Below, one piece after another: positions 1-64,000 of a stretch of 64,000 nt of DNA; within the stretch, counting starts at the first letter, position 1, and each line of letters opens with the position of its first letter. The DNA lies in assembly GCA_037447605.1 (NCBI GenBank), contig CM074805.1, positions 2,947,361 through 3,011,360 of the forward strand, in the 5' to 3' direction. The position numbers and the translations under genes were made by a program. The notes beneath the pieces were generated by a model, which saw nothing but the letters and a program-made list of their open reading frames with translations, was not told where the DNA came from and did not search any database. The DNA is from Zygnema circumcarinatum SAG 698-1b. Its lineage: Eukaryota > Plantae > Zygnematophyceae.

Positions 1-456
1 GCCCGAATGTCCGACACCTGTGGTAGAGACAGAAAAGGAGATAGAGTCACATTCGCTTAGGAAAAAGAGTGCCGATTAATGTGCACACATGCTCTCTACA
101 CAGCAGCGACAGACACTGCGACTTTAGCAGAGAAAGACTTAAGCAAACGAATAGCTTGATTCCTTTCAGTAATCGACACTGAACCCACAGAAGGTTGTGG
201 ACTCCGTCAGTCAGAACAGCGGCGTACCTGTGGTGTCTGCATTATGTCGCTCAGCACTCGCACATAGCGTGGCCTCAAGAAGTTGTTCCAGTGGTTCTGC
301 ACATACAAACAGGCTTGACTGAGTGATATGAGCCATAATGCACAGGAGAAGGAAGTGACGAGGTAAAATTTTCATGATTACAAACATCATGGAATTGGAT
401 ACAGCTGCTTAGATTGTAATGGCAGCTTGTCAAAAAAAACAAAGCAAAACGAAACA

Positions 457-1124
457 TTAAAACAAGGGGAAAACATTGCTACGAAGTTTGGATATTCTAT
501 CGCGAGAAAGAGGAAGTAATTTCTGGAAAACGGCCATTATCCATACACGCGTTTCAACATTTTTTTTGATTTTTTTTTTCATAGAGATGAAGTGAGAATG
601 CATATGCGGGTAGACTGACTTTGACCGCGCTGTCCGTCCTGCCGCGGAGCTCCTTGGCGATGTGCGCCCATCGCGGGCCGTGGCGCGTGTAGCCGAGCGC
701 GACAATGCGGCTCTCCTCTTCGCGAAAGCGGTCCTTCACCACCTGCACCGCGCCGCTCTCTCCCACGTTAGAACGCCGCCGGCCTACAATTCAAGCGCGC
801 GGCACGCGAGCAGGCGGAGGGCGGAGCTCACCGCGGGGTTGAGATGGTTGAGCCAGCGCAGGCGGCAGCTCTTGGGCGTGCGCGCCTGCAGGCCGGTCTC
901 CTCCGCGACCTGCGCCCACCCGTGCGCGCCGAGCCGCAGCACGGCGGCTCTCAGGGCTCGGTCTTCCGCGCGGCTCCTGCAAAATGCATGATCGACCCAT
1001 TCCCCTTGGTCAAAACCTATCTCAATTGCAGCGCCAGAAGTGTCTCATGGGACCTCCACCACGTTCTCTCAGACTGTAGCTTCGCAAAGGCCCCATTGCG
1101 GCTGCAGCTTGGCCCAATCCAAGC

Positions 1125-1156
<32 letters not shown>

Positions 1157-1352
1157 GGGGGGAGGGTCCCACCAGCACTTGCGGCCCTTGCGCTTCCCCG
1201 CCGCCATCGCCAGAAGGGCGCGGTGCGCTAGCCGACGGACGAGCAGACCGCGCTCCGCCCGTCGGAGCAAGTGCTGCGAGCTGCCGCGGCGCCACGTCGG
1301 CCGCGGGCGGCCACAGGGCGCGGGGCGGCGCGGGGCCGCTGCGCGCATTCAA
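457..1352 (-). CDS. R2R3-MYB transcription factor, divergent. Exons about 1352-1060, 976-832, 742-620, 522-457
   Basis: GT-AG splicing gives RTW/SRAEDRALRAAVLRLGAHGWAQVAEETGLQARTPKSCRLRWLNHLNPA/VVKDRFREEESRIVALGYTRHGPRWAHIAKELRGRTDSAVK, matching MYB R2 (W-W-W) and R3 (F-W) repeats. Start codon and last exon are uncertain. Confidence 0.85.
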
Positions 1353-3262
1353 GAAGGGCTCCTCCCGCCGTCAATGCGCGCGCCGCCCGCCGGGCCGCGC
1401 TGGCGCGGGAGCGTCCCCGCGCTCGTGCGCGCCCGCCGGCAGCGGGACTCGAACCGGCGACGCCCCCCGCAACGTGCGCGAGATCGCGCGAATCCGACTC
1501 GCGTTGAATTCGCTGACAGGCGGCGGGCGGGCGGGCGAGGCTTGATCCGCGGGTGGATCCGAGGGAATCCGATCGCGCTGCGGCCAAGCGCGGGGGCGAC
1601 CGGCAAGCTGCCAAGTGGCACTCTTGGAGCACTCCCCGACAGCGTAGTTATCATAAGGATGTCGTCACCATATAACATATTGACGTCATTTTTTTCACAG
1701 AATTTCACAAGGAATTCAGCAGTCCGTGCAGGGCTTGTCAATCTTGAAAAAATCTGTCGACTGAGTTGTTTCGAGAACGGTACTCTTTCCTCCGTCGTGG
1801 GAGTCCAGAACAAGTACTACTTCCGAAAGTGAGTTCTTACGGGATCATATGAAGATTGCCAAGCTCCATTCCATGTTCGCCAAAAATTGCGGCGGCTGTA
1901 CGGCATAGCCAGCACGTGAGCTGAAAGCAGGCGGATATATACCAGCGCCGTACAGTCGTGCAGGCCACGTGCTGCCTCCGCGGGCCCCCATTGATGGACG
2001 CGCCGCCAACAGGGCTCCAGTGCGGCACCGCGTGGGCTGACGGAGCTACGCCGCGGCCATCATGACCTCCGCTCGCGCCAAAGCTAGGGTCGCAAAGGGT
2101 CAGGCACCTTCTGGCTGCGGCCGGCCGGGGTCGATTCCCTGGCCAAGAAACAAGTAGCCATGTAGGCTATGCGAGGGCCTAGGGTGCTCGTAGGGGGATA
2201 GGCTCGACGCGCTCGAACGGCCCCCTCCGATTGGCCGGTCGCGCCCGCCCGCCCGAGTACCTCCGCCCGCCCGCCCGCCCACCCGGCGGCGGCGCATCCC
2301 TGCGGGCGAATCGCGGATCGCTCTGGCCCCGGGCGGCGCCACGACGCGGTCCCCGCGGGGGAAGTCAACAAGTGCACGCGCGTATCCCCCACACGTGTGG
2401 ACACGTGCACGCACACGGCGGATCTCTCCCCGCGAGTGGGCTCCGCCACGTCGCGCGGGCCCGCGAGCGGCCGCGGGAGGGCGCCGCGTGGGCGCGCGCG
2501 GATTTGTCCGACGGCGCCGCTCGGGGCCGTCATGGCGGGGGGCGGGCGGGATTCGATTCGCCGCGGGACGTGCGCGCCATTGAAGCGGCGGCCGTACTTA
2601 GCGGTTTGGGCCGTGGAAGACGGGAAGTGCAAGTACTGATCCTGTAACGTTGATCGCGCAAATTCAGATTCGGATCAAGGAAAAGATGTGGCATTGATCG
2701 AACCAGCTCTTAATTCGAATCCGTTCGCGTATTCGCTTGTTTCCATGATATTGTACGCCCTTCTTGCGGCTGACGGAAGGGAGTACGCTCTGGGGTGGGT
2801 CCGTCGCAGTAGGTCGCGTCACATAAAAATAAGACATCGTGAGTAGGGCGTGCCAGTCTACGAAACGTTAGTATGCGTGTTCGTAAGTTTGACACCAGAA
2901 TGGGTACTCCAGTAACATCGCGATCTGCCTGCGGCATACTTTCGTAACTTTTTTTTTCATAACGCTTTTGTTAAGTCTGACAGCCCCTAGTTCTACCGGT
3001 ACTGTCACTTCGATACCAAAACGAGTACCCTACTACTAACTTTGACTTTTGGAATTGTTCAATTTGCAAATGACAAGGTTTCATTTGAAATTTTGAACAC
3101 TCGATCTGAGTAGTCTTTCAAAATGAACAATTAAACAAAGTTCAAAGTCTGAATATATTCGGTCACACGCGTGGATTCCAATTTTGCCACGTAGGATTCA
3201 AGCAATCTGAAGGATTTGCTTACCTCCGGCCCAATTTTCGCCGTACTGTACCACTTTTTGCT

Positions 3263-3762
3263 GGGTAACTCTACTGCACCCCCGCGTTTTGTCTTTCGCA
3301 CCCCCGTTTTGAAAAATTTTCCTGCCCGTTTTGGTTACTCCCCAGTTTTGAATATTTCGGGAAAAAATCTTTTTCCCGCCCCTTTCGTCCCCTCCGCTGC
3401 CCCCTGTTGCGAAACGCGATAAAACTAAATGTATGATCGTTCGTTTATGTCCGCGGTTGCCTTTTAACGGTAAAGTTTATGGGTGGGTACCGGGAGGTGT
3501 CGAGTTCGGTTGTTAACATTCCCCCTCCCTTCATTATTTTTTGGACATTCCATCCCCTCGTTTTCTCCTTTTCACTATTGACTTCCCACAATGTGCGACA
3601 AAAGAAAAGGGATTTGCATTGGTCTCAAGATGGTGAGGCCATCAAATAAACATGGACAAATCAACATGGGAACCACAAGAAATTAGTCGCAAATGAAACA
3701 AGCACAAAATAAAAAAACTAGAAACAAAAAACTAAACTAAACTAAGCTTAAGTACAAAAACG
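3263..3762. mobile_element. Mutator-like MITE (family A), partial copy cut by an assembly gap
   Basis: Starts with GGGTAACTCTACTGCACCCCCGCGTTTTGTCTTTCGCACCCCC, the TIR of the element at 14555-15222. Its internal part 3676-3762 is the reverse complement of about 15070-15160. Confidence 0.7.
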
Positions 3763-3772
3763 NNNNNNNNNN
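3763..3772. other. Assembly gap (10 N); other gaps at 7541-7550, 8715-8724 and 15161-15170
   Basis: Runs of N in the sequence. Confidence 1.
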
Positions 3773-3790
3773 GAGTATTCAGATGGAGAC

Positions 3791-5414
3791 TTGGGACCTC
3801 AAGAAGAACAGGCGATCCGAAATCCAAGGACGGATTCAGACTCAGAGGAAGAAGCAGTCAGAGAAAGACTAAAGATGGGCATCACCGAAGAGAACCCTTA
3901 TCCCAGTCTGGCTTACCTTGAGCAGATCGAGTCGATTGAAGAGCTGCAGCGACTCCATCTAGGCAGTGATGGCCATAAACTTCGCTGGCAATATGCACGC
4001 CGGATGATCAAGCTTGCAGCCTGCCCAGTCGCTGTCACGGCCGCAGATGCCATGAGGAGAGGAGTGCTGTTTGAAACTTGGAGGTCCCCACCGCGGCTCA
4101 CCAGAAGGCACAAACCTACGGAATCCCAATCATACTACTGAATTGCTGAGTCCCTTCAACACAGGCAGTGCACGCAGCCCACAGCAGAGCAAGGGATTCC
4201 TCAGAAGACACCCTCACCTCCGGCGTTCACAACTTACCCATCCGGCAGCCCCAGGCGAGCGACTTCAGGGGCAAGGGCAGGACGATCGCAAGGACCCTCC
4301 AGCTTTCGCACCAACCTGCAGAGAAGCACACGAGTCAGATCTGAGTTTCCCAGCAAGATGGAAGAGATGATGACCAAATTGATAGCAATGATTCCTGAAA
4401 AGAGTGAGGTGAGGGATACCACGGGCATCATCACAAGAGGCTTCACCGGCAAGCAGGAAGATGCAGAAGCCTGGCTGAGACATCTTGAGGAGAAGGCAGC
4501 GCAAGCAGACCTGAAGGAAGACCAGTGGATCAAGCTGGCCCTTGGAGCGCTGGAAGGAGAGGCAGTCAACTGGAAGCTGTCCCGAAACTGGCACAAAGCG
4601 GATGTCGTCGGCAACCTGACAAGGGACACATTCAAGCAAGCTTTCAGACAACGCTGGATTTCAGATCCGATCACTGTGCTAGACCGACTTCGCTACATAG
4701 AATGCTACAGTGATGAGCGGCTGTTTGAATTCACTGAGCGTTTTGTGCGCATGGCAAATACGATCGAGAACTTGCCTGACTTTCCCGAAGTTCTCCAGTG
4801 GTTCCGCAAGGCCATCAGCGAGAAGGATCTCCACCTGGATCGTGAGCTGCGCGACAACCCACCAGCAGATGCCCAGGCATTGTTAGAAAGGGCAGAGCGA
4901 ATTCAGAAGGATCAAGAGAGAGGGCAGTTGACATGTACGACTATATTACATGAACGCTAGACTCATTGCAGAGATCGACTCTATGCTGAGTTGAAGACAC
5001 AGAATCAGAAATACTTGTATGACCCTATGCTACATCTTCTAGGAACAAGCCGTCTTTCTCCGGCATCCCTGCTCAAGACGTCCGGTCAGCCCCTATGGTG
5101 CAGCCTCTGGCTATAGCCAGCGCGATCAACCCCTTCCCATTTCCCCGTACCCTCATGATCCTGCACATCCCATTGAGCCGGCGGTGAATCCTCACATACC
5201 AGATGTTTCTCGTCCAGGATATCGGGCTCCTTATTCCGATCGCACACCCGAAGAGAGAGAAGCTGCCAGGGCCGATCTGCGCCGTCGGATGACAGAGGCA
5301 CGGGTTCCAGAGGGCGTCTGTCTGGCCTGTGGCCTAACTCACAATCCGCGGCTGCGTTGCGGACCATGGACCTGCACCTTCTGCCAGATCACGGGACATG
5401 ATGCCCGTGTGTGA
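3791..5414 (+). pseudogene. gag: Retrotransposon gag with CCHC zinc knuckle, frameshifted
   Basis: FTGKQEDAEAWLRHLE...WIKLALGALEGEAVNW...TFKQAFRQRW (retrotransposon gag-like) and CTFCQITGHDARVC (CX2CX4HX4C) near 5375-5414. Confidence 0.85.
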
Positions 5415-7699
5415 TGCGAGGTTCTCAAGCGAGAAGGCCGAAAGAAAAAAGAAGGAGGAGATGAGCCTACCTGGAGATTGCCTTCATGGACATGTTTTTG
5501 GCCACTCCCACACTTTGCGAGAACTCCAGCCTTCCCTCGCCCGCTCCACCTCTCCTTCACCCGCTACACCATCCTGAACGCGTATCCACCTGCACCCCAT
5601 GGACTCCCCTTCCCTGACAAACGCATTGGGTGCTGAGCCCGATCCTGCTGCCCGCTCACGCACTGCCCAGATTGCCGCGGCATTACAACCGGCTTGGTCC
5701 GAATCCCCCATCACTTCTGAAGAGGGTGCTCATGTTGGTGTGAGGGGCAGCAAGAAAGGAAAGAGTCAAGGAAGGGCATCACATGCCTTGGTATCAGAGC
5801 TCTAAACTTTTCTTTTGCTTCTCCTTGGGCCACATACCGCTCCGCTACGATATGCCTTCTCGTCCACCTCTCACCAGGTGCGCACAGCGGAAAACTAAAA
5901 CACCCCACCTACAGGTGAACTCTCTCATCCTCCATGGTCCTGCCCTCAACTCCACGCTCCTCGGATGATCTCCTCGTGTGGAGCAACACACCGCCCATAC
6001 AATGGTTGCCTCCACTCATCCACCACGTCAATCCAACATGAGGACTCACATGACGAATGATACAGAGGAGAAAGCCCTGTGACAGCTCAAAACTCCATGA
6101 GTGTAATACAAGCTCTTGAGGAAATCTACATAGATCCCTTATGCTAGATTCTCCTCCTCTCATGAGCACTATCCTATCCTCTCATAGATAGCCTACACCC
6201 CAACTACAGTAGCCAAGCACTACTTGCCTCCATGAACTCCTCCTCTACCTCAACACATGAGGGACACACCATCTAGCTCCTTCATTAAGCTTACACATTA
6301 TTGAGAGCTAGTTCCTTCACGACCTTCATACACAAGGTCGGACTCCTCTAGGCCTCAGCTCTGCCCACCTTCCCCACACAACAACGGTCGAGCAGCATAA
6401 CATTCAGGGAGAGTGAGTGACTGCGCGAGCCAAGCTTGTTCCCTCTTAAACTATGGCGGCCGGCGTGACGTGACACCCGATGTCACGTCACAGGCGCACT
6501 AGCAAGCGCATGCATTCAACAGCCAGCAAGCCGTTCAACGGCCAGCTACGCGTTCAACAGCCAGCTTCGCGGTCTCACGTAAACCTACGCCAGCACCGAC
6601 CTACGCAAGGTCGTCCGTACTGTTCCGCCGCCCGGCCGTACACGTCCGCCGCCCAGCCGTACATGTCAGCCTCCCAGTCAAGATCTGACTCGGTCCCCTT
6701 CTCAGTTGACCTCGTCAGAGCCGCGGACCGCACTAAGGGTCCAAGCAATGCCACGTGCCACCTCCTCATTCGCCGCCGACATCTCCAATCTCTTCAACCG
6801 ACTTCCGCGTCACGTCACGCCCGAAGACTGCGTCGCTATCTGCATGCTGGCGCGACCAATCATGTCGCTTCGTGCAGATCCGCCTCTCGCGCCAAATATC
6901 TCCGCGTCCATTCGTTTCGCGTCGTCCGTACAGTCGCGCGCCGTCCGTACGGCCGCGCTCCTTTTCGGTCAAGCACATTCCGTGCACCCCCTTTGGTACG
7001 GTCTAAGCCTAAGCCGTAATCCTACGACCCTAGACCTTCCCTAGACCTGTCGTACCATGCCCTAACGATACGGGCACCCCCCATGTTCGGTCCTACACCA
7101 AACATGACCATTCATACATGATATTGTCCCTATACCACCACATTGATGTCCCGGACAACATCCATGCTAGGAACTAAGTACCAACACCTTGATGTACCCT
7201 ATACATCAACAGCTCAAGCCCGGATTGCCGAGATTGCAAATGCCTTGCGCAGGCTCCCTGTCAACCAAAGTGATCCTCATTCACATCCCCTGCCATTCCT
7301 CCCTGCCGATGTCAACAGCGCCAGCTCATCTGGCACGGCTCCACCGGTCGCCACCCTTGTCCGGAGAACTTCAGTCCTCCCTCCTTCCACGGGTCATCCA
7401 TTGGGATCCACGCCTGAGGAGGAAATTGACGATCTCAATGAGGAGGAGCCGACAGCGGCGCAGCCAGAGCCGAGAGCACCAGCGACAGAAGAGATGCACG
7501 TCAACCCTCCCCATCGCCCTCGGGCAGCCCGATTCTACCCNNNNNNNNNNCCGATGACGAGACTCCCCCTCCTTCTTCTCCGAGTCCAGCTCTCGGTGCG
7601 TCGACGGGAGAACTGTTGCCGCCAGTGCTACCTGCACCCAGCTTTCCCCCCCATGAGACCATCAGTGATGAGGAGTGGCTGGAAATAGAGGGGCAGATG

Positions 7700-8990
7700 C
7701 GATTGGGGCCTGCAGTCCTCTCAGACCCGATCAAGCATTCTCAACTACGCCAAGTGCTGCGCCGAAATCACCTAGTTTTCGCACGACATTCACTCGACAT
7801 CGGCAAGACTCACTTGATTGAGCACCACATCGATACGGGGGATGCGCCTCCCGTGATGACCCTGACTCCCTACCGCTTTTCCGCCGCGCAGCAGGCCGAT
7901 GTCGAACGACAGATCGACGAGAACGTGGCTGCCGGATTGATGGAACCTGGAGAAGGGCCGTGGGCCAGCCCGGCCGTTCTGCCCCCAAAGCCGGATGGCA
8001 CACTCCGCTTCTGTGGGGACTACCGAAAACTGAATGCAATAACGAAGTGGGATCCCTACACATTACCGGATGTGGACCTGATTCTCCACGGCGTCTCCCC
8101 TGATGACCGGTGGTTCTCGGCACTTGACATGCAGAAATCCTTCTGGCAGATCCCCCTGCGGCAGGCCGATCGCTGCAAGACAGGGCTTCGCACAGCCACG
8201 CGCTTTGTGCAGTGGACAGTGCTTCCATTCGGGCTCAAGAATTCCAGTCAGACGCACCAGCGCCTGGCCAACCAGGTGTTCGGCCCCTGTCGTGCCTTCT
8301 GCGAACCTTACGTGGATGATGCCTCCCTCCACAGCAAGGACTGGTCCTCCCACCTGCAACACATTGACCAAGTCCTCCAACAGCTCATCAGTGCGCGTCT
8401 GAAGATTGCACCCAAGAAGTGCAAATGGGGACATCAGGAGATCACTCACCTCGGGCACCGCCTCGGCATCAATGGCCTGAAACCATCACTCGACAAGATT
8501 GAAGCGATTGACCTTATGCCCATTCCACAGAATCTCACTCAGCTTAAGTCTTTCTTGGGACTCACCTCCTTCTATCGCCGGTTCATCAAGGGCTATGCCC
8601 TTATTGCGCGTCCCCTACATGCCCTGGAGAAGCACGGAGTCCACTACGAATGGAGCCGTGCGCAGGATTTGGCCTTCCAAGCGCTCAAGAGTGCCCTCCT
8701 TCAGGCTCCTTGCCNNNNNNNNNNGCGCAGGATTTGGCCTTCCAAGCGCTCAAGAGTGCCCTCCTTCAGGCTCCTTGCCTGCATCAATTCGACCCCACCC
8801 TTCCCACCATTATTGACGCTGATCCGGAACCAGACAGGTTTGGGGCAGTGCCACTCGAAAGCATTCTCAGATGACACCGTCATGCCACTGCAAGCAGGTC
8901 GTCCCACAACTCGACCTACGAGGGAGAGGCCGGGCTATCCTTGGGCATTTGAGAAGTTCAAGCCTTCACCCTTACCAGCCCATCATCCGG
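7700..8990 (+). pseudogene. pol: Gypsy pol: reverse transcriptase and start of RNase H
   Basis: SPAVLPPKPDGTLRFCGDYRKLN, LDMQKSFWQI, LPFGLKNS, YVDD, LKSFLGLTSFYRRFIKGYA, followed by PTIIDA (RNase H, frameshifted). Confidence 0.95.
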
Positions 8991-9559
8991 GATGACCTAC
9001 ATGCCCTCACCCGGCCGCACATCACGGCTACCTGACGCTGAAGCCTCACTCATGGGCCATGAGTCTTGGGCAGTACAATGTACTCAAAGTCACTCACCGT
9101 CCGGCCCAGTCCACGCATGCTTGATGGACCAATCGGATCCCTCGCTTCCCCTCTCGCCACGATCGGCCGTCCTGACCCATCCCTTCACTCACCCTCTGAC
9201 CCGAGACTTCCCCATTGAGATTCACGCAGAGCAAGACTACATGAGGTCACATTTAGACTGAATTATCGAGATTCCGGCCACGGCCACCACCCTCCATCGC
9301 TGGTAGACTTGACTTCACCCACGGCCACCCCCACGCGGATCCGTGGAAAGTCTCTCATGGAACGACGATGGCTGAAAATCCCTTTCTTCCCTCCCCATTT
9401 CTCAGCCAACTATGTCCATTCTGACTCTTCCTTCCTTGTCACGTCATGACTCGCACGCCGCCCACTCCCTGTCACGGAGATCTAGAGGGCCCACGGGCTC
9501 CGCCGCGCCCGGAACTTCTCTGTCGATGATGACGGACAGATTCTTTACCTCCCCTCCGG

Positions 9560-10640
9560 CCTTCCTGTTCCATTCCCTAACGAGCGTATGGAAATTCTCG
9601 ACGTCGCCCACGATTCCCAACCTGCAGGCTTCCACCTCGGACAGAAGAAGATGGTGGCCCTGTTGCAGGAGCGCTACTATTGGCCCGGCCTCCATGGCGC
9701 GGTGAGCCGCTACATTGAAACCTGCACCCGCTGCCAACGCGGCAAGCGCTCTGCTCCCCCCGACCGCCAACCCCTCGAGATGGGTGAGATCCCAATACGC
9801 GGCGTCGCCGAAGACTGGAACATCGACACCTTTTCTATCCCCCAGCTCGGCACCCCCTCTGGCTACATTCGGGTCTTCCTAGCCGTGGACAGATACACCA
9901 AGTGGGTAGAGGTTCACGCTACAGAATCTAAGCATTCCGCCCACTTCGCCGCCTCCCTGACGCTATCACTCACCGTTGATTCTCCCCCACCTTGTCCACT
10001 CTGATGGCATTGAGCAGGGGGGCCTTGCCAGCTATGCAGACTTCCCATTCACTGCACTCTCAGCTGTATCTCCCCTGGGATAATGGGCCTGAGACGTACT
10101 CATCCAGACGTCAAGGATGCGTGTGTCCGCGGTGCCGCGAGCTGGACGACTGCGCGAGTCATCCCCTCCCTGCTTCACGCACAAGATCTCCGCCCATCTC
10201 CACGGGCTTCTCTCCCCTACGAGCTCCTCTATGGACGTAAGCCTCGCATTCCCCTTGACCTCCTCTTTGCTGAACCCCTCTTCTACGATGACGCGCCTCC
10301 CCCGGATCGGGTCGCCCAGCTTCAGCTCCTGGCCCTCCGCTTCCAAACCCTAGATTCCATGGCCTCCCACCACCTCGAACGCGCGCACAGACGACAACTC
10401 ACCGACTTTGGGAGGCGCCGACGCGCTGCTCTCCCGCCCAATCAGGTAGCGCCACATCAGCTCATTTGGCTCAGGAATCTCGCTAAACCGACTCAACGGG
10501 CTTTTCCGTGGTTGGGCCCCTTCATCTGTGTCGGTCCGTCGGAGATCCCGGGTTGGGCCATCATTTTGGAGGGCTCACTTTGGAGTGGGGAAATCCCCTG
10601 CCCTCGCCGTCTGCTCATGACTGGGATCCATCCCGCCTGA
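9560..10640 (+). pseudogene. Gypsy integrase, frameshifted
   Basis: Zn-binding H..HLGQKKMVALLQERYYWPGL...CTRCQ, core WNIDTF...LAVDRYTKWVE, then PYELLYGRKPRIPLD and a WLGPF (GPY/F) module. Confidence 0.9.
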
Positions 10641-10945
10641 CTGCTGGCTGTCCTCCCTCCCCTTGCACTGCCTGCCCACATCGCCTTCACCTTGTCAGTC
10701 CATTCCACCTGCTTGCCAATTCTGCAGTTCCTGCGACTCCTGCCCCTTCGTCACAGCCCGCGCGCCGCCCCTTCCCCAGACGGTCCTCCCATATTCTCAT
10801 TCGAATGTACGTGAAGCTTCTTATGGCTCTCCGACCGTCTCGCTGGCCTCCGTCCACGCCATCATTGGCTCCTTCCATGCCCTTTGTCCTCTTCATTGTG
10901 CCCGGAGGGGTGTGCGCTTGTTTCCTCCTTGGCATGTGCTAGAGA

Positions 10946-11972
10946 TGGAAACGGAACGGAGCTGCGCTCGACGGATCCTGCGCCAGCTTAATCTGATGAC
11001 ATATGCTGCCATCCGTGCCATGGATCAACGGAGTCCTAGGAGCTTGCCAACGGAGATCCAGAGAAGGCGGCGCCATGCGCGGCGGTCACGGAACGGCACA
11101 CTATCCAGCAAGGCGCACTCGGGAATACACTGCTGCAAGGCTTGCCATTATCATTGTCACCTATCTGAAGGCTCCACGAGTTGTTCAGGGCCTCTCAGCT
11201 GGGAGAGTTGGCCAATCATGGTTGCCACGTCTAGACTCAATATCTATTGTCAGTGTTAAGTAGATGGGATGTCAGCGATGCTGTTTGTCTTTAGTGCTGG
11301 GCTTAGCATTTGTATTCGCCGTGTGGTTTGTTGTCTTGTTCTTCTTTCTTCTTTTCCTTCTTTTTTCAGTGAGATAAATATGCCAGTAAGAGAGATAAAG
11401 AGAGTTCCATGCCAGAGATAGAGAGAGAGAGAGAGAGAGAGAAAGAGTCTTCTGCTCTATAGCATTTGTGACGTCCCATCAGCCCCGCTTAGGACAAAGA
11501 TTTCAGCGGAGAAGACAATTTCATCAGACGAGCCCCCAAACCCAACCGGGCCGGGGTGAGTTTCCAAAATACCACCTTTATCTAAGTTGTGTCCTGTTTT
11601 CCCTCTGCTGTCACTATGCCAAGCCCCTATCTTGCTCTATCCTGCCTTGCATTACTCTCAATGACCAATGATCACTAGAGGCCTAGCTAAGAGACTAGCC
11701 GAGGAGAGGACAGGGGAGGAGGGTCCCCAAGGAAGGGCTCTTTGCGCATCAAGTCCAACCGCCGTGGGAACGCTCTTCGTGAACCTACGCCTTCACACAA
11801 GGCTGCACTTCCCTCTCAATCCCCCTGATCCCCGGCTCTATGCAGCAGTGCACTCCACAAAGACCAACACCCCAACCCTCACGCCGGGCCCAGCACGTGA
11901 CGCCGCTGCCGCATAAAGATCTCATGCATTTCAGCTCACAATTCCCTTTAACCCCACTTATCTTGTGCTACA
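10946..11972 (+). repeat. 3' LTR of the gypsy element (about 1.03 kb)
   Basis: Ends in TGCTACA and aligns along its length with the reverse complement of 13236-14241. The 5' boundary is inferred from that alignment. Confidence 0.8.
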
Positions 11973-39347: not shown

Positions 39348-39352
39348 TGAAG

Positions 39353-45400: not shown

Positions 45401-45744
45401 GCCACCGCCGCGCGCATGTCCGCCCGCTCAAGCACGCTCCCAAGGACCTCCTGCGGGACGCCCGCCCAGGCGCCCTCCCTGCAGGCGGCCCGCTCAGCCT
45501 TGCCAATGGCTGCCAGCCCCTCTGCTGCTCCCTTCAGGAGATGGAAGGGGGGTCCATTTTGCAGCCCGTGCAGAGGACTGCCTCGCTGCTTCCTCAGGAG
45601 ACGAAGGTACGGCGGGAAAGAGTCTGCGCCCGCTTCATCTTTCGAAACTTCAAAGAAGGCGCTCAGACTGCAGGCATCAGACATGCGACAGGGCTTAGCT
45701 GGGGGAGGATACCAGACAGCTTTGACTCGTGCAAAATGGCGCAC
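42460..45744 (-). CDS. SKP2: F-box/LRR protein, SKP2A/B-like
   Basis: F-box WAGVPQEVLGSVLERADMRAAVAASGVCRDWRVALGQGVLELSFSW; Cys-containing LRRs (LRALDLS, LKSLNLGWCERVSDDG); C-terminal AVQAVCDTFPDLHTC...SLNISGCL as in plant SKP2. Start codon uncertain. Confidence 0.88.
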
Positions 45745-49919: not shown

Positions 49920-52900
49920 TCAGATTTCCTCCAGATCCTCCTCTTCCCCTTTTCTTCCTGCTTGCTCCTTCCAGAAAAGTAGTTGCTTCCTCAGTTTTTG
50001 AATCTCTCGTGTTTGCACATTGCGTGAGGCATCATTGGTAATCGATCGGACACGAGTGGCGTAGCTGCACTCAGATAACAGCGGCTTCACAGATTAGTGC
50101 GGCTCCTTTTGTCAAGTTGGAACGTCAATCGTCAATCTTTGCTAAGGTACAGCTGCAGAAATGCGCACACTAAAACGCAAGGTTCTTTCACTTTCCTCTC
50201 TCAGCAATAAACGTAACGAGGTGCAACACCAAACTCACCTTAAAGAATTGTGCGTTTCGTCCAGGTTGGACTCTGCTGGCGATATATTGACAAACATAAG
50301 TGTCTTGGCATTGCCTCCCAATGAATCACTCATCAGCATCGTCAGCTTGTGATTGCGGTAGGGAATGTGAGGATCATCCTGAGCGAGCGCACTGATAACA
50401 TCACCTAGAGCCGAGAGCGACTTATTGATTGACTGTGCCTCTTTCAGCTGCTCTCCCGTGCTGCCCGACTTTTTGATCCGCTCTGATCCCGCAAGGTCCA
50501 CAAAGCTCAGCTGCACAAACACCATACCAGAATTTCCAGCTCACAAACATGCGCCTGATTGCAATAAACCAATCCATACCCCATAGGCACAGCGACAGCT
50601 CTGAGACCAAGGCATTTCAACATATCCCTTGCCTCAACTGCTGGCATGCAGACCACTAAACTTGTGGATTTGCTCATCTTCCTGATTCGTCAAGGCCCCC
50701 GCAAATTAGTGTTTGCTAAGGCGAAGTTTACCTTGCCCTTCAAAAGGGTTTGCGTCTGGTAGTTAGTAGCCTCAATGATGATCGAAAGAATGAGATGGGA
50801 GCGTGAACTCTCCGCATTCATGTTGGTTCCTGCTGTCACTCTGCGCTCCATACCCTTCTCTACAATGGTCTGAAGCTCCTCCAGCTTCTCCACTGAGATG
50901 ATAGTCGCGTTTTCCACAACCACCATTCCCTGAACCGAAAAAAGACATAATTTCAATATGTACCTTTTCAGGCACGGACAGTGTCACGAACATTAGAGAT
51001 GCCCTAAAACATGGCAGCTTGCAATCGGATGCTCAGAGATGTGATAAACCAATGACAGGTACTTCGCTCATACAGAAGTCAAGTATGCCAACCAGCCGAC
51101 AACACAGTTCGCCCATTCCAAACAGACAGGAGATCTCACCTTGATGTCTTTTTTTATCTCTAACTTCTTCTTTGCTGCGCCCTTCGGAACCAGGAGGTCT
51201 TGAAGATTGTCTTGGTAAAGCTCCAACATGTATACCTGAATTAACCTCTCACGAAGCACAAACGAAATCAGGACCATACTCTAATGCAATGACAGTAGCA
51301 CATTTACATTCCTCCACCGTGCATTAAGATTCCGAGGACCTATGATGTTATCGAAAGACGAGGATTGCAGTCACTTGTCGTGTCAAACAAGAATAAACAA
51401 CATCTGTACAAGGACTCCACTGAATGAAAACTTACTGTCGAGGTAAGCAATGCGCATTCTACAGACATTGAAAAAGTACACATCGGGAGCTCACAAAGTA
51501 AAGGTCATTCCATTTCAGCCATTACACTTTCCTTAACGGATTTATTCAATTGCCGCCTCGATGTAGGCAGGAGAACTGCAAGCATGCCCCGCTTTCTTCA
51601 TAACGATCCTTCGAGGCTCAAAATCATGCACAACACTTTCCGTCCGAAACTTTTCGCCCAACAAAAGCATGGCTGCTCCTACATGTGCAAGAGAGTGGTG
51701 GCAACCAACCTTAAGAGCAAACGAGATTTTGCCCGAGTCCCTGTCCAAACAGCGGAACAGCTCTTGCATGGCGCGGGCAGTAAGGCCCTCATTCCCCGGT
51801 GCACCGTAAATGGTGTATGTCTTTCCCGACCCCGTCTGTCCGTATGCAAAAATGCATACGTTATAGCCATCAATGGCAGACTGCACCAAATACTGCACAG
51901 TACATCACCAAAAGACTGAATTAGGTGCGAAACATGTGATTCAACTAAATCATAATAAAAAATAAATTCACGTCCCAAAATGAAATGGCATGCAAAGTCA
52001 GCTTTGTGATCCGCTCAAATTGGGTACTGGTCCCACCCAGACAGATAAGTAGTTTTTCCTAAAATGTGTCCAGTCGGAAAAAAAAAGAAGCCATTTCCGG
52101 TTGTGCAATTCCTCACCTTCGTGTCTTCAAACACTTCCTCCTGAGATGCTCGCTCATCAAATACATGGTCAAATTGATGCTGTTTGGGCTTTTCTCCATC
52201 CTTCCATGGGTGCACCATGGTGAACTCGTCTGGTGAGGAAATGACATTCTTTTGATTCTCCACGATCTCTTTCTCGCTGAGGGGCCGAGATCGTGCGTAC
52301 ACTCTGATTTTACCTTTCATGTCTTCCATCATATTAAAGTAGCGCTTGCGAAGCAACTGCTCGTCCATGTACAGCCTTTCCAGCTCTGCTATTTGGTCGC
52401 TCTGCTTCTGTATGACCTCAGCTGCGACTGTGTTTTTCCGTTCCATATCCTATGCACCATCGTCCCGCCCCACGAAAACTTAAGAACAGTCAGTCTCAAA
52501 AGCCAAGCCTTTGCAGAGCTAGCTGCCGTTCTTCAGAAGAAGAAGCACCAAACGAGAAATTTACGCCTTTCTGACAAAAAATAAATGCAAAGGGTGCACC
52601 TTTGCACGGTGCTACATATGGTTTTGTCTTCATACCGTGTACAAAGCGGTCCATAAAGCCGCGACATGCCAAATAGAGTATACGGGGAAAACTCTTTATG
52701 CATGTATTTTACCAAGCAACAATAGCAATGTACTTTCCAACCCTCACCTCTTTCAGTTCACGAAGTTCTTCAAGTTCTTTAATAAGATCATCAATATGCT
52801 CCATTTGGTGTGTTTTCTCCGCCAGTTCTGCTTCCAGCATGGTGATGTGCTTGCTCTGCTCCTCAGCTTTTCTCTCTGCTGCTTCTACTCGGTTTGCCAT

Positions 52901-55900
52901 ATCTTCCTTGTCCTTAGCCCACTTAGCTTCCAGAGCCTTCATCTGCAAATACAGCAGAAACAAACAGGAATCGCATTTTGAGAAACAACAATGGAATATT
53001 CATATATCCTCACCTTTGATACCAACTAGGTAACGTGGTGAATGCAAGTGAGACATTCCCTGAGTTTACTTCACACATCACACAAGAAAGAGCCCATTCA
53101 GTCTGAGAAGCAACTGTTACAAACCTCGCCTGCCTTCGCATTTTGAAATCTGATCAGCTTCTGGTCTGCAAGCTGGCGCTCCTTAAGAGCACGTTTGTGT
53201 TCCTCCTCCAATTTTCTTGCTGAATCGCCTTTCTGTGCAGAGTCCTTTCTGGCCTCTTTGAGCTGCGAAGTTCAGATCAGATAAAGGCTTCATGTCATGA
53301 CGACAAAGAAGAACAAACATAAGTAAAGATGAAAAATACACTTATTTTGGAAATAGCTATCGATGTCAGTGCGGATACGACAGGAAGTTGTGAATTGATG
53401 AGAAATAATTCATCCGCCAATTGCCATCAGATGACGTAGAGCTTTAGAACGTAGAGAGTTTTAGCTTCAAAACACCGATTCGACTGCTCAGAACGCATCC
53501 AACAGGTTGACATAAACACAAGAACTGTTAAATGCAGATAGAGTCCTTGCCTAGCCATCTGAATGAAGCCAATGAATATAACTCTTCAATTCAAGAGTCG
53601 ACGACCTCATACCTGTGCTTCGAGGCTCTTCATCCGTAACTGCGATTCCTTCGTGTCAGGAGTCACTTCTCCCAACTTTTCAAAGCCCTTCTTGCCTGAA
53701 GATAAGCCTCCGATGCTACGACGGCCCATAGTTGAGCTATCAGAATCCCACTGGACCTCGCTCATAGATTCTGCTGCAATGTTCTGTAAGAACAAGAAGA
53801 CATCAGCAAGAAAGATTCAATGTGTTACTGCCCAACGATACGGAAACAAAGAAACGACTTCCCCTATCAGTCATCTCTGTCCCGAAGCACGGGAATAGCT
53901 TACGACCGTTGAGAAATACAATGACTTCTTGACCTAAGCTGATTAGGTTACAAACCTTTTGTCCAATTGTCCTGATTTATTTCCTCGCAAAACACTGGAT
54001 GCAATATTCATTTACCAAACTTCTTGAATCTGAGCTCAGGGCCTGCAGTCTCCACGGATGGACATACAGCCTTTCATATGCACACAAGCTGTGGGCCTAT
54101 TCACTAAACCAGCAGCATAACTGAAAGAAGCGGGCATACACTCGGCATGGGCAGCCACCTGAGCAACAAATTCTTGTTCTTGCACAGCCTTGGCTAGCCC
54201 ATCTCGCTCTGCTATCAGTTCCTGCCGCAATGTGTCCTCTGCCTTCAAGCGCTCACGCATATCTTCCACTTCCTCTTTCAGTCGCTTCTCTCCCAATTCT
54301 CTGTCTACCAATGTTTTGGTGAGCTGCTCAGCCCAAAACAGCCAAGGTAAACAACCAATCAGTCCGGTGAGACATGACATCAGTGAAAGAGTAGAGTCAG
54401 CGACTCGAATGATCAATCTACCAGAGCAACAGATAATGAAAACATAAATGCACGAGAGGCGATAGCATATGTCAATAGTAGCCTTAGGAGAAGAATCCTT
54501 TGGAAGTGAGCCAAAAATGACGTAAAATGCAAGTGGCAGAGGAGAAAGAGAAACAGCAAGGGAAATGCTCTACTTTGGGCAGGTAAGGCATCTGCATTGC
54601 AATGTTATTCATGACACAATCACATTACTGCAAATAGAAGCCTCGTCACGACACACCGAAATAGCACACATACGTTGGGGCTGTGAGAGACATCAGGTGC
54701 ATGCATACTGCACCAAAAATAAACTTTTCTCGTCACAACTTCAACGATTGTATTCAAGCCTTACGATAACTTTAGTTGTTCATACTCAGTTCTTTAACTG
54801 ACCCATACAGAATTAAGTTGAAATTGTAGACTAACAGACCAGGTTGGCACAACCACCTACTAGCACAAGCACCCGTTCCTATGTTCGATAAGACGTGTAG
54901 AATCCCACAAACTCAGTAAGAAACTCTGATACTCACCTCCTCAATCTGTCGATTTGACTGCTCAAGCTGCTTCGCCATCTGCATCATCTTCTGCTCATGT
55001 AGCTGCAGGTCTGCAGCATTCTGCTTTAAACCTTCTGGAGCTGGCCCGTTTGGAGTTGCAGCATGACCGTTGGTTTTTGCAGAAGACACGACTGGAGATT
55101 CACCGTTTGCAGAAGGCAAACTGTTGACCATTTGTGGGGAATGAACGAGGATAGGGGCACCCTTTTTGGAGTATCGGCGCAGCATGACATCGTTGATGTG
55201 TGTCTGCAAGGCCACACATATATCCTCTCCCTGCAAACATACGGCAGGAGATAAGTTATGACTACTAAAGACTAGAATACATGGAGTCTCTCAATTTGAT
55301 TCGTTTGCTAAGTCTTCTAAAAAACATTTTGGAGGGTATATGCAGATTTTGTACCACTGACGCTTCCACATACCTGCTTTGTTTCAAACTGAAATATATG
55401 CATGACGCCAGCTACTCGCATCTTGAAGAAGACAGCTGAAGCACTGCTCCCAAACTGCATGATGTCACGAAGCTCTGCAGAGTGCAGGTATTCTTTTGGT
55501 GTAGGTCGGAAAAAGTGCACCTGCATGAGGACACAAACACAAGGGACTCAAATGCAGAAGAACAAAACAGGGCAAAGACATGATCCGAGGCTTGTCGTTC
55601 AGCAAAAAATGTTGAATTGAAGTGGCTCACTTACTCCTCTCTTGTTTATGCCAATAATCATCTTTCCGGGCAGAAGACCAATGGGATCCTCCATTCGTCG
55701 CACAGTGAAAAAGCTCGAGTTGCCATACGGCAGTGCTCGGAGTATGCGCAAAAGTTGCTGCCGTGCGTCGTCTTTCACCAGATGTCGCTGCACAGAGGAA
55801 ACGCGACCAGAATTGGGTTCTCAAGTGAGACAAGACACTTGAACAATAAACACATGTAGGCCGAAGATATCTGCAGATACAGACTCTGCCTACAGGTAGC

Positions 55901-58900
55901 ATACATAGCAAACATGACGACAACAATGAGCATAATGTTGTGGAGAACATCATCGACCGGCTCACATGGTCCCTCTGTAACAATACCAAAACATCATTTA
56001 CTCCGAAATTTTCACATCGCCCAACTAGACAAGAGCACGATTGAGAGAGTTACCAGCAGGAGCTATATACATTAATGTTCACCCTACAGAAGCACATGGA
56101 ATGCCATCAAGCCCATCACAAAAGTGAATGCCGACCCTAAGCTTACAAATAAGATCAAAAAATGAGATAGCACATAATTCTAACAATTGGTAGCGCCAAA
56201 ACTGAGGCCGCCTTGAATATCACCAGGCAAGACAGAGAGTTGCTGCAGTGTGGCAGCATTTTTGCAGCTCGAGTGTTTACAGACAAAAAGGTCGATATAC
56301 TGCGAATGATTCATTTTCCCCAAACAAAAGCTGTTTTCTGTTTGCTTTTGTCTACTTTGAGGGTAGTGAATGTAAGGTGTGAGGTGCTTCTATGAGATAT
56401 TCATAACCTTCATGATTTTTTATGAAAAAAGTTAGCCGCAATACCAGGGCTCCCACATGTGTAAGACCAATTAACAATTGCTCAGCGACGGGTACGAAAG
56501 CATTACCATATTCTTGTAGCGATTGAGTACTTCCCCCTCCCACTCGCGTTTTGGCCGCATCATTATTGCCTGCTTTGGAATCACACGATCTACTTGAGAC
56601 GGCCAATCCCTGCACAATGCCATGCATGAGAACCATGTAAAATCAGTCATGCTTCCGATTTCTCAGTTCTCGCTCGTCTTTCTCATCTCTTAACTACACC
56701 ACGAAATTCATACGTGGACCTCACGACAACGAACCAACCAGACCTACTCAGCAGCATTGACGTCAACCATGGTTATAAAAGTGTCTCTTTTTTGCACATA
56801 GGCCGAAGTTCAAACTCATTCAATGATCATTTCTTATAAGAAAAAAAACAAGGTGACTCGATCGCAGAAGATCCTGGATGCCGAAACACTGGATGCTAAT
56901 TTAGTAGATTATCAAGGAAATGAATGATGCAAGTCAATCAGCCAAGGAGAAGCCCAATGAAGAGCAAGCTCCAAACAACATGGGCCTATGCTCCATGCTA
57001 TCTGGGGAGCCCTTTGTTTGCGCACCTACAGACCTGCTTTCGAAGAGGCGTCTGCACATACACTAAGGCATACATACACCGTATGACCTATGTCCACTTA
57101 CATTGAGCTCTCTGGATCTGCTAGAGGTCCGAACTCGGCAGCAATTTGCAGAGCTGCAAGCTGCGCTGCATCCTCGCGATTAACAGGATAATGTCCTGCC
57201 AAGTAATCATGCTGAGCCTGTCACACCCATCCCAGACACTTGTCACTTAATGAAATATGTTCCTGTACTGATGTGTCCTGAAGTGGATGTCGCTTTGCCC
57301 CTGTTCGACCTTAACCAATCAAGCCAGATTTATTTCTGACGACAATCCGAACTCTCACTTGGCAGAAATTTCACAAATATGTTGAGAAGTTACAAGTGAA
57401 GTCTATGAAAGCTACTCAGAGTGCACAAAATGTGTTCTCTTTTTCCTGACACGAGACACATAGTGTAGCAAGCAAGGAGCACAAGCTCCACAATTTTATC
57501 AGAAATAAATTTGCGCAATGCCCAGTAAATGTCGTCTTCCAAATCTGAGATGCAATGCAGAGACACACCTTGCTTGGTCCTACTTCCTATGAAAAACCAT
57601 CACTCACCTGTACATAAGACAATTGGATGAACACTGGTTCTGTGATTGCTTCATCTGCTTCTCGAAAGAGTTTTTTCTTGAAAAGCAGACGACGCACAAC
57701 AAACTCTCCCTTCGTGCGTTCGGGCGTGGCTTTGAACTCCGCTACCACATCTCCTATGTACCGGTTATCGTCGAGTACCAAGTGCTCGTCTGCAGGTTCA
57801 GCTGCACTATGCAAAAAAGCCATGACAGGCTGTCAGACAATTTCACTAGACAATGTATCTAGCAAGTTACATCTGTCCAAGACGTGTTCTACAACATTGC
57901 AAGATCGAGCACTGGCAGCACTGCTACAGCATTTTCGCTCACATGTGCTTGCCGTTTACTGCACTAGAGTCAGGTCTAACTCAATTTCGCTTCTCAATCA
58001 TTGAAAACGTGAAAACATGTGCTCAGCTTGCAGGATAGTTCACACAAGCAGGTGAGCGAGTTGATATACCTCCTGACGACTCCTGTGACCTCACGGTTGG
58101 CACAAATTTGCGGCACTCGAAGAGTCCAAAGGTTTGGAAGTTTTGCAACCGGATGATCCCCGCCACCTCCTGCAAAGCATCGTGTTCTCAGGTAAGCAAG
58201 ATTCTCGAATTGGCATACCCCGTACGACACCGTATAATCGTGCAAAACTCTGCAACTCCCCAAATTTTTGTGAAGGAAGCAGAATTTACGTACAGAAGCC
58301 TCAAATTCTTTTTCAAAATTTTCTTGAAAGGTAAAGACAATCTGCAACTCTTCATAAACTTATAAAGCTCACCTCCACGGCCTCAGCTACAGTGGTAGTC
58401 ATGTCATATGAAACCTCTTCAAATGTGTCATCCAAGAAGAAGGCAAGTGCTGTAAGCTTCTTTCCCCGCATGAGAACCTCCACCTCGTCAAAACTAGGGG
58501 GTACCCGTCGTGGGCCTGCCTTTACCGAACGCTTGAGAGCCTTCCAAGTCGCAAGAGCTTTAGCGCGGATTTCAGGGTCCACCTTGCCAGCATGAGCTTG
58601 CTCATGAGCATATTCTGAGAGCGGGCCAGCCAAAATCTTGCCAGGTGGCATTGCGGACGAACAAACATGTAGCAGGTCCCATGCCTTGAGGGATGACGAC
58701 CTGACATCAAAAGTAAGCAAAGTCCACCACCAATAACAGAGAAAACCTTATTCTCTCACTGTGATGTTCTTCGGTTGCTGTAATGTCTTTTCTAGTTCCT
58801 GCTGCCTTTTCAACAACTGCATTTCGAGACTACCAACCAAGTTTTTTGATTACCAATCAGGGTGGAAATTCTTGCTTGCAAGCCCACTTGATTCATTTTT

Positions 58901-61012
58901 AGACAGATGATTCGACACACCTTTCAGGATTGTTGCTTGTCTGTTTGTGCAACTGTGCAAAAAGTTCATCCCGTAGTTCTGCCCTTCGAAGTGTGTGTTT
59001 TAACAGCTTCACAACAATAGCAATCTCCTCCGAGGCATCAAGTGGGGAGCCATCAGCAAGCCCCATAAAACGTAGGACTTCTTGGAAAAGTTTGACAGCC
59101 TTGCTTTGCAAGTCACCTGACATCTTCAGAAGAGATACAGGGATTGGCTCCTGCGGTTGAACAGACAAAGATGAAAGCAAAACCAACATACAAAATCATT
59201 TTCAGGTTTAAATAAAGCTCCCCTATTGGGCTGCAGTGCTAAAACAGCAGGCTGAGCAAGTTACATCCAGCAGCTGTGCCAACCGAATGCAAGCATACGA
59301 GGAGCATCGACAGGTTTAAGAAAGGAGTTAATCTACAAAGGAGAAACACTGACAAGAGAAACTAACTTTTGAGTTTTCCAACCTTTTGAAAGTTGAGCAT
59401 ATCTTCAATCGTGTATCTTTTTGCAGCTCGGCCAGCAGTTGGTTGAGGCGCAATTTTTCCACCAAAAAAGCCTCGCCGTCCGCCAGTTCCAAGCTGCTTA
59501 TTGCTCGCCTTCAAGAAAGCCTCCACTTGATAATACTCCAGAAGAGGGAGTCCTGCCATACTTCCTCCTAGCGAGGAACTGCAAGATCCATCCCACGGAT
59601 TACCTTAGTATAAGTTCAACATATCCAGTTTCTAAAGGGCAGATATGCTTGACAGACTGCATACTCCACAATTGAAACCGATATGCTAGATAGGCGCTAA
59701 AGCAATTTGGAAATCAATTGGTCATCGATTGAGAACAGTTTTGAGGAATGCTTTGCACGACACATGTTATGCAACCGGGGTTTGCCGGCCTTTTAACACA
59801 CATAGCCAGCTGCACACACCTTGTGTTCGACAAACTTGCTGCCTCACTCTCCTCATCAATAGCGGCAGATTCTCCAGTTGAGAAGTCCTTTCCTAAGCTC
59901 TGAGACCTGGTACTGCCACAACATATGAGAGTCAAAATTTCAAATTAAAGAATGAAACAAATGCACTTTCTCCTTAAGCAGTCGGGTTTTCCCCTCTTGA
60001 TGAGCCAATACGGCTCTAAGGCCTTTATACCTATACAACTAACATACTGGACAGGTCCGCTTAGAACATAGTTAACAACCACTAAATGCCCACTCATGGT
60101 TCTAACGCCTCTTTCAGTCAACCCATTAGTTTCGGCTAAGTCCACCCTGACGGAGTGACCGACAGAGAAGTCGTATGCATTGCATATGAAAGCTCTGCAA
60201 CAGCATTGACATCCACTGGTCTCCCACCTTTACCCCAGTCAAGAAAGTCTGCACTGTTCTCCAATGCATCACACAAAAAAGGCCTCCTTATCGTCACTGA
60301 AAGCTGACTGATGGAAGCAAGCACAGACGAAGCTGCTCTGGTAGTTGAAAGCTGCAGTAGAGAACCTACTTACCAATCACAAGGTTTCCACAACTATACG
60401 AGGGAATTAGTCACTATAAAACGAGGATAAACGATTTCTCCTCTTCAAGCCGTTTTCATTCTTTTTAATTATAAGAAAGGCATACGGTGCAGAGAAATGC
60501 AGTTATGCAATTAATGACCTCCCTGAGGAGAAGTGCCCTCTCCGGTCCTCAGAAACTGAAGCCGAAAGAGGTGAGGATGAAGTAAAGCAAATCTCATCGT
60601 GAAATTAGAGCATAGTGAGGTCAAATGCAAAAGAGAGCAAATACAGTCACAAAACCTATTTGCGATCGAGTGGACCGACGATTTCGACAAGCTTTAAACG
60701 CCGGAAAAGCTGCCGCATGTCTCTATGTTGCAGAGTAGCTTTACATGCCGGAACAGCTGTCGCCCATGTCTAGAACACTACATCCGCTGTCCAGCTATTG
60801 ATTCTATCCGCCAAGTCCTTTCATTTACCAGTTATAACCCTTGGGACTTTCCTTCGATGTGGCTGCAGCTACAAAAGTGTTTCATTGCCCACAAACCTGT
60901 CTGATTGCTTCTCAGAGTCCTCAGAGTCGTCCCATTCTCCAGGCCTGTGCTTGCCGCCTCCATCCGTAGACCCTAATGATGTACTTCGCTCCGGTGGATC
61001 TCCTCCCGCCAT
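49920..61012 (-). CDS. KCBP: Kinesin-like calmodulin-binding protein (MyTH4-FERM-coiled coil-kinesin-14 motor-CaM-binding helix)
   Basis: [20 protein letters not shown]; MyTH4 [14 protein letters not shown]; [29 protein letters not shown]; motor [55 protein letters not shown]; CaM-binding [14 protein letters not shown]. The N-terminal exons are tentative. Confidence 0.95.
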
Positions 61013-63032: not shown

Positions 63033-63161
63033 TTTCCCGCGCTTATTTACCTCCCGGGTCTCCAGCATCCTCTCGCTCGCCCCCTCACACTGTTCCGCTT
63101 CTCCCATCCTCTGCCTCCCCACGCCGCTCCTCACACTTCTTCTGCCTTTCCACTTTCCCGC
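63033..63161 (+). promoter_or_regulatory. Two E2F-binding sites (TTTCCCGC) upstream of ORC6
   Basis: TTTCCCGC at 63033-63040 and 63154-63161, about 200-330 bp before the ORC6 ATG. Pre-replication complex genes are established E2F targets. Confidence 0.7.
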
Positions 63162-63366
63162 AGCTCCCTCTCCTGTCCGTTCTCTCTCTCCCCTCCATTC
63201 TCTCGCTCTCACTTGCACACACACACAGACGAGAGATGCGCAGTGGGAAGTATGAGTGATAGTTGCATATGCCAGGAAATTCATGTATTGAGATCACTTC
63301 CCCAGAGTATAATCCACGGTGAAAATTGGAGTATCTAGGTCTATCCTTTTACAACAAGATTCCACC

Positions 63367-63489
63367 ATGGATATGCAAATGATTTGTCGTAAGCTTGAGC
63401 TGGAATCACCCCCAAAGGACGCCCTTCGGAAAGCAAAGGAGCTCATTCGCTTATGCTCTGCACGCTTCAATGCGGCCTCTCTTGGAATT
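63367..63489 (+). CDS. ORC6: Origin recognition complex subunit 6, first coding exon (gene continues downstream)
   Basis: MDMQMICRKLELESPPKDALRKAKELIRLCSARFNAASLGI followed by a GT donor; resembles the plant ORC6 N-terminus (MDI..I.RKL.L.....IRKA.E.RRL....F.SS.IG). Confidence 0.8.
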
Positions 63490-64000
63490 GTTAGCTCTGC
63501 TTCCTTCCACCTAGCTTTCACAACATTTCACAGACTGCTTTGCAATACAAATTAATGACAGACAACGCTTTTGAAAGGCTGATGCTTAGTCAGTGACATT
63601 GCCACAGATCAATCACATCTTGTCGTCCCTCTTTCCTTACCTGCCCTCCTTCCGATCTTCGTTTTTTCCTTCCATTTCTCTCTGTTTCCGACGTTCTCCT
63701 TCCAATCTTTACCTCACGTCTATCCTGCCTGATCCTGTTGCCTCCGCCGCACTTCCCAGTTCTCCTCCCGCCGTTGTTTTGACAGATTTTAAGCCTGTTT
63801 AGTTGTGTATAGTGCCATGCTTTCTTGGAGAACGTCATTTATGCCCGAACTGATTTGAAGAAGCTAGAGTTCAGTATGCTTCATCCAGTTCGGTATCTAC
63901 AGATGCTCCTCTGTGTTTATGGCCGCTAAATTCCGAAGTAAACAGTTGCCATTCGCACCTACTACATTCCTGGTACTTTATTGAAACTCTTAAGGGAATG

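Follow-up and report, generated by a model that had tools for sequence, protein, structure and literature searches.

The 64,000-nt stretch of contig CM074805.1 analyzed here (hereafter, the window) carries a gene of the SelU/PRXL2 family whose reading frame contains a TGA codon, the predicted codon for selenocysteine (Sec). The gene lies head to head with the isovaleryl-CoA dehydrogenase gene (IVD), and the S-adenosylmethionine synthetase gene (SAMS) follows on its other side; the genes and elements of the window are listed in Table 1. An earlier note, made from the letters alone, had described the gene as a selenoprotein gene and left its host undecided between a charophyte alga and a seed-free land plant that had retained Sec.

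Table 1. Positions of the SelU gene, its signals, and the other features of the window
Feature	Position	Strand	Evidence and remarks
SelU/PRXL2 exon 1	32237..32362	+	ATG at 32237; MAARRPED...FWKDQ; RNA contigs X20 record 10 and X7 record 23 end at joint 32360/32972
SelU exon 2, redox motif RRFG-U-RLCR	32974..33091	+	RNA joints 32360>32972 and 33089>33348, GT..AG
In-frame TGA, predicted Sec codon, residue 54	33007..33009	+	Kept in RNA and DNA contigs, 0 differing letters
SelU exon 3 (LETLGVEDFVEGGFWKGELYIDND...)	33350..33560	+	Pfam PF13911, 33.1 bits; RNA joint 33560>33876
SelU exon 4, stop TAG at 34072-34074	33876..34074	+	RNA contigs run on to 34324 (X20) and 34372 (X7)
Type II SECIS, SelU 3' UTR	34222..34285	+	AUGA at 34230-34233, helix II, AAAA, mini-stem UGC-GCAA-GCA, 3'-side UGA; RNA folding
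18S rRNA V4 fragment, 96 nt	34508..34603	+	Identical to the organism's abundant 18S rRNA; weak Rfam SSU_rRNA_eukarya match, positions 615-751
MITE-like inverted repeat, high-copy	34623..34923	.	100-nt arms, 92% complementary; 101-nt center
R2R3-type MYB, two Myb repeats	557..1044	-	Pfam PF00249 on both pieces
Ty3/gypsy-type retrotransposon	3752..11256	+	Reverse transcriptase/RNase H relatives at 34-43% identity; integrase domains; holds gaps 3763, 7541, and 8715
Ubiquitin-specific protease (UBP), N-terminal MYND-type zinc finger	16486..23737	-	UCH domain 18385-18804
Isovaleryl-CoA dehydrogenase (IVD), head to head with SelU	26849..31990, right end approximate	-	Pfam Acyl-CoA_dh_1 and _N
S-adenosylmethionine synthetase (SAMS), six coding exons	36307..38960, right end approximate	-	Pfam; very high RNA depth
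F-box-like gene, weakly supported	42455..45792	-	F-box-like E 0.0016, below cut-off; second piece without match
KCBP-type kinesin-14	50238..59195, ends approximate	-	Pfam MyTH4, Microtub_bd (neck), Kinesin (C-terminal motor)

The SelU gene and its in-frame TGA codon

The SelU coding sequence (32237-34074, + strand), which was spliced by hand from a reading of the 31.7-34.7 kb region, comprises four exons and encodes 217 amino acids (aa) with one in-frame TGA. Its introns measure 611, 258, and 315 nt, and all three are bounded by GT-AG. Exon 2 was first placed at 32.5-32.9 kb, a placement that was dropped for the current one once the RRFG-U motif had been located. The contigs of two RNA-type runs, one of them a single 909-nt contig, contain exactly the three predicted joints with 0 differing letters, and the TGA is therefore present in the mature SelU mRNA. 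The word depth of the spliced mRNA was ~100-180, compared with 20-40 for the IVD exons. In the same RNA contigs, the 3' untranslated region (UTR) extends to at least 34324 in one run (X20) and 34372 in the other (X7).

Exon 3 alone matched the Pfam family PF13911 (AhpC-TSA_2) with 33.1 bits against a cut-off of 27, and a profile-free search using this exon as the query retrieved 80 family members. The TGA at codon 54 stands in the context VVVIHLLRRFG-U-RLCRGG. It aligns with a TGA in the transcripts of four further loci (L002-L005, described in the next section) and with Cys in Closterium, in Marchantia, and, through the Marchantia protein, in PDB 9us9 (PRXL2B). The RRFG-C-RLCR of the full-length Marchantia homologue aligns with the RRFG-C-VVCR of PDB 9us9, which places the TGA at the first redox Cys of the family.

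The SelU protein resembles PRXL2B, the prostamide/prostaglandin F synthase of PDB 9us9, in its PF13911 family, its RRFG-(C/U)-xxCR motif, and its length of ~200-220 aa, whereas prostaglandin chemistry is not expected of an algal SelU. Mammalian SelU/PRXL2 members use Cys, and fish, birds, and some algae are known to have Sec forms. Judged from family membership alone, the protein would adopt a thioredoxin-like fold, and it may act as a thiol/selenol oxidoreductase.

A search for SelU peptides and gene names in the supplements of selenoproteome and Zygnema papers returned 0 matches, and word-indexed protein searches returned no match for the SelU exon-3 frame or for a 536-aa UBP exon; the best match to the reverse transcriptase of the retrotransposon in those searches had 43% identity. 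The analysis provides a validated model of a Sec-form SelU gene, which is probably cut short or overlooked in automatic annotation.

Recoding signals and a second gene with a predicted Sec codon

RNA folding revealed a type II Sec insertion sequence (SECIS) element in the SelU 3' UTR, within the part that the RNA contigs cover. In this fold, a single base separates the AUGA from a helix of ~10 pairs, followed by an unpaired AAAA and the mini-stem UGC-GCAA-GCA; a UGA stands on the 3' side. The Rfam model SECIS_1 aligns over the whole length of the element and keeps its AUGA, AAA, and UGA in register.

The profile-free search with exon 3 also retrieved a 159-aa open reading frame (P0002) that starts at a Met just past the motif. 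Its sources are transcripts among the Logan contigs of SRR8128904-SRR8128908 (loci L002-L005), which encode a full orthologue with a TGA at the same codon and in the identical context HLLRRFG-U-RLCRGGAM. The protein of L002 is 63% identical to that of the window, and the nucleotide identity of exon 2 is 82%; the L002 transcript differs in being AT-rich. Synonymous sites are saturated between the two genes (dS, the synonymous divergence, 1.9-4), and L002 is therefore not a close relative. The ratio of nonsynonymous to synonymous divergence (dN/dS) was 0.069 for the 51 codons that precede the TGA and 0.155 for the 162 that follow it. Because dN/dS remains low past the TGA despite saturated dS, translation beyond the UGA is under selection in both species.

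A type II SECIS is likewise present in the 3' UTR of L002: GAAGA and GAA flank its apex, UGC-GAAA-GCA, and its AUGA stands one base ahead of a 10-pair helix. The helix II letters differ from those of the window, and the apex common to both genes is UGC-GNAA-GCA. The second Sec orthologue and its comparable element provide a usable pair of algal SECIS elements.

These signals point to a mechanism in which the type II SECIS of the 3' UTR would direct the reading of the UGA at codon 54 as Sec, and in which Sec would occupy the site of the catalytic first Cys in the (C/U)xxC motif. If the TGA were instead a true stop or a site of non-Sec readthrough, the locus would be a pseudogene or would encode a peptide of 53 residues, and its 3' hairpin would resemble a SECIS by chance. 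The TGA would then have been kept in a second species across saturated synonymous sites, precisely where the family has its catalytic Cys, and ahead of codons under purifying selection. Such a reading must also accommodate a SECIS whose AUGA, AA, and GA are in register and whose apex is conserved between two species in which the helix letters have changed, as well as a spliced mRNA that is well expressed relative to IVD.

Part of the evidence does lean toward a stop codon and counts against a selenoprotein. SECIS_1 scored the SelU element at 13.5 bits, below the gathering threshold of 35, and Rfam run at that threshold over the whole 64-kb window returned no match. The folding z-score of the hairpin was only -1.1 to -1.4, and no tRNA, tRNA-Sec, or Sec machinery gene was found within the window. 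In our own judgement, the low score is an effect of a model built mostly on animal elements. We regard a true stop or non-Sec readthrough as very unlikely, and Sec insertion at codon 54 as the reading to which the TGA, the SECIS, and the selection past the codon point.

A stable hairpin was also observed directly after the UGA (33010-33065). The folding energy of 33007-33075 was -25.7 kcal/mol (z -2.0), and 8 of 200 shuffled sequences folded as well. This hairpin may be a Sec redefinition element or plain coding-sequence structure.

Linkage to the genome and lineage of the host

The earlier note had argued that SelU does not lie on contaminant DNA, naming a chimeric join around 32-35 kb as the finding that would undo the linkage. 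The contigs of two DNA runs from different studies, X1 record 1 (10,433 nt) and X3 record 14 (10,440 nt), cover 30600 to 34537 and 34544, respectively, with 0-1 differences, and run ~6.5 kb further to the left, so that single contigs carry SelU together with the 5' exons of IVD. A SelU that came from a contaminant or a mis-join, outside the plant-lineage genome, could appeal to the break of the short-read contigs 460 nt past the stop codon (34537-34895). The break point, however, is a high-copy inverted repeat (34623-34923), the only place at which the short-read contigs break, with a summed depth of 7,700-37,800 compared with 29-59 for the single-copy flanks. The next contig (34895-36500 and beyond, into SAMS) and the SelU contig are equal in depth (29.1 vs 28.4 in X1; 58.8 vs 53.9 in X3). 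RNA runs from further studies hold the spliced SelU transcript, and the nearest relatives of the gene are streptophyte.

Because single contigs join SelU to spliced IVD exons and the SAMS contig has equal depth, SelU is very unlikely to be a contaminant or chimera, and the claim of the note holds. SelU would accordingly be native to the genome, in head-to-head orientation with IVD and adjoining SAMS.

The labelled SelU relatives available for a tree were those of Closterium (three strains), Marchantia polymorpha, M. paleacea, and the zygnematophyte Spirogloea muscicola. In the maximum-likelihood tree, the streptophyte clade received support of 99/98, and the window sequence grouped with L002 (97/92). 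Closterium and P0003, a EukProt sequence, joined this pair (92/93), whereas Marchantia, the unlabelled P0086, and Spirogloea stood on another branch (90/79). The window protein shares the KAY.AL.LKS / DFV.GG pattern with the labelled sequences of Closterium and Spirogloea, whereas the GIEKLG..FQ pattern, seen in Marchantia and in unlabelled open-reading-frame fragments presumed to be embryophyte, is absent from it. The SelU tree by itself is suggestive of a zygnematophyte grouping rather than a grouping with Marchantia.

The nearest labelled relatives are those of Closterium sp. Naga37s-1, NIES-53, and NIES-54 (CAI5486573.1, CAI7792175.1, and CAI7813335.1), which are 59% identical to the window protein over 183 aa and belong to the same sub-clade, although they are Cys forms (RRFG-C-RICR). 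Their loci showed no synteny with the window (the Closterium neighbors are PRK/CYTH and RanBP1) and no DNA similarity, and the GC content of the Closterium locus is 56%, compared with ~46-49% in the window. The host is therefore none of these sequenced Closterium strains, and the reading of a Closterium-like host was dropped. The proteins of M. polymorpha (PTQ45918.1 and BBN18926.1) and M. paleacea (KAG6552345.1) are 50% identical over 201 aa and differ in carrying Cys in the motif RRFG-C-RLCR. The Marchantia SelU locus has no neighbors in common with the window.

The Closterium Cys homologues (L001:10001-21582 of Naga37s-1; P0001/P0081) are annotated as fusions with an alpha/beta hydrolase or with repeated exon-3-like segments; these models probably reflect gene-model merging or local exon duplication. 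For Spirogloea, the EukProt model (P0025) was annotated without the RRFG-(C/U)-xxC exon, and its N-terminus is unrelated. Such a pattern is the one expected when a predictor skips a Sec exon and may hide another Sec form, and P0025 shows how such genes can be mis-modelled.

The contigs of the whole-DNA runs X1 and X3 total 68.3 and 76.6 Mb, with depths of 29x and 59x on the SelU locus, which bounds the genome near 70 Mb. This size is far under the 226 Mb of the Marchantia genome, and to our knowledge, bryophyte, lycophyte, and fern genomes are all larger than ~70 Mb. It is consistent with Zygnema circumcarinatum, the smallest streptophyte alga sequenced, for which 67-71 Mb, an N50 of ~4 Mb, and 20 pseudo-chromosomes have been reported (PMC11096116), though it is not unique to that species; Chlorokybus (74 Mb, N50 0.75 Mb) is the only other streptophyte alga so small in the table of that paper. 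The simple-repeat array, the element resembling a miniature inverted-repeat transposable element (MITE), and the Gypsy element of the window fit the repeat make-up of Zygnema, which is rich in simple repeats and MITEs. Genome and transcriptome surveys have found Sec machinery in every streptophyte algal class and a complete set in no embryophyte (PMC6627142; restated in 2026, PMC13578239).

A host among the seed-free land plants (bryophytes, lycophytes, or ferns) with both the Sec machinery and a Sec-form SelU retained would have to be reconciled with these surveys, with the small assembled genome, with the sequence patterns of the protein, and with a free tree in which SelU groups with Closterium and an algal-type Sec orthologue and not with Marchantia. 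Several points nevertheless pull the assignment back toward that side. A tree constrained to put the window sequence and L002 with the Marchantia group was not rejected by an approximately unbiased (AU) test (p 0.12), and the SelU gene alone is therefore not decisive for the lineage. Spirogloea stands with Marchantia despite being a zygnematophyte, at a node of weak support (90/79). No hornwort, lycophyte, or fern sequence is labelled in the SelU set, and two SelU intron positions (VxIG/xE and GDGx/QLGATF, the slash marking the intron) coincide with those of the Marchantia orthologue. The neighbors, being genes general to streptophytes, do not tell the two kinds of host apart, and the lineage draws on one 217-aa protein, a ~70 Mb genome, and a prior from the literature.

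Taken together, the SelU tree, the genome size, and the Sec literature indicate that the host is very probably a streptophyte alga, and it most likely belongs to the Zygnematophyceae. Somewhat more likely than not, it is Z. circumcarinatum or a very close relative. A land-plant host appears highly improbable. The choice between alga and land plant set out in the earlier note was the right question, and its algal branch is favored by the tree, the genome of ~70 Mb, and an expressed Sec gene with a SECIS, even though the AU test does not formally rule against the other. We consider SelU to be a genuine and functional nuclear selenoprotein gene, native to a streptophyte-algal host, with a probability of roughly 0.88.

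Were the host a land plant, the accepted loss of Sec at terrestrialization or the embryophyte origin would be wrong or incomplete. Because selenoproteins are documented in such algae, this novelty very probably falls away, and SelU is very probably an expected and presumably unannotated algal selenoprotein rather than evidence of Sec kept in a land plant. With this gene, the algal sister group of land plants gains a well-supported SelU of the Sec form. The gene also bears on the question, raised by Liang et al., of whether the Sec system functions in zygnematophytes that diverged later (PMC6627142). Within one streptophyte family, Sec is found in some algae and Cys in Closterium and liverworts, and the replacement of Sec by Cys around the emergence of land plants can therefore be followed gene by gene.

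Neighboring genes and elements

Of the plant-type neighbors that the earlier note had listed, UBP, IVD, SAMS, KCBP, and the R2R3-type MYB were borne out by Pfam, the MYND part of UBP being recognized by eye. Its SKP2-like gene was reduced to a weak F-box, and its ORC6 had no Pfam match in the window and is unconfirmed. The two halves of the MYND finger lie at ~23.3 kb (CFVCKGPTKLRCSRCKVVSYW) and ~22.9 kb (CQRKHW..GHKGEC), and the split finger had no Pfam match. An exact look-up of a KCBP exon reading frame returned no record, and a protein atlas returned generic MyTH4 clusters only.

RNA joints of IVD were found at 30662>31096 and 31176>31769, with CT..AC boundaries. The first exon of IVD begins near 31.98 kb and SelU transcripts begin by 32161, and the promoter region shared by the two genes (31769-32237) is GC-rich. 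The five coding introns that the earlier note had ascribed to SAMS agree with the six coding exons identified here; the left end given for SAMS (36307) marks the region of its last coding base. Immediately upstream of the SAMS start codon lies a long simple-repeat array with units of 4-8 nt (38870-40730), which translates as MYVCMYVC / HTYIHTYI and is interrupted by a GC-rich patch.

The 18S rRNA fragment sits in intergenic DNA just downstream of the SelU 3' UTR, beside the MITE-like element. Its sequence was found in RNA contigs at a depth of ~50,000 with 0 differing letters, and the loose ends of these contigs continue as rRNA (CTGGCCTTCGTTGGCTGGGGCG). A metagenome scan with a 30-mer of the fragment returned 0 matches.

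The window contains four 10-N gaps. All are confined to its GC-rich section of retrotransposon and repeat DNA (3.7-15.2 kb), and SelU lies 17 kb or more to their right. Three of them showed no overlap between their sides. The fourth (8715-8724), in the reverse transcriptase-RNase H reading frame of the Ty3/gypsy element, hides no missing sequence; the same 55 nt stand on both of its sides, as an overlap left unmerged. UBP, IVD, SelU, SAMS, the F-box gene, and KCBP are gap-free in the window, and only MYB lies beyond the gaps.

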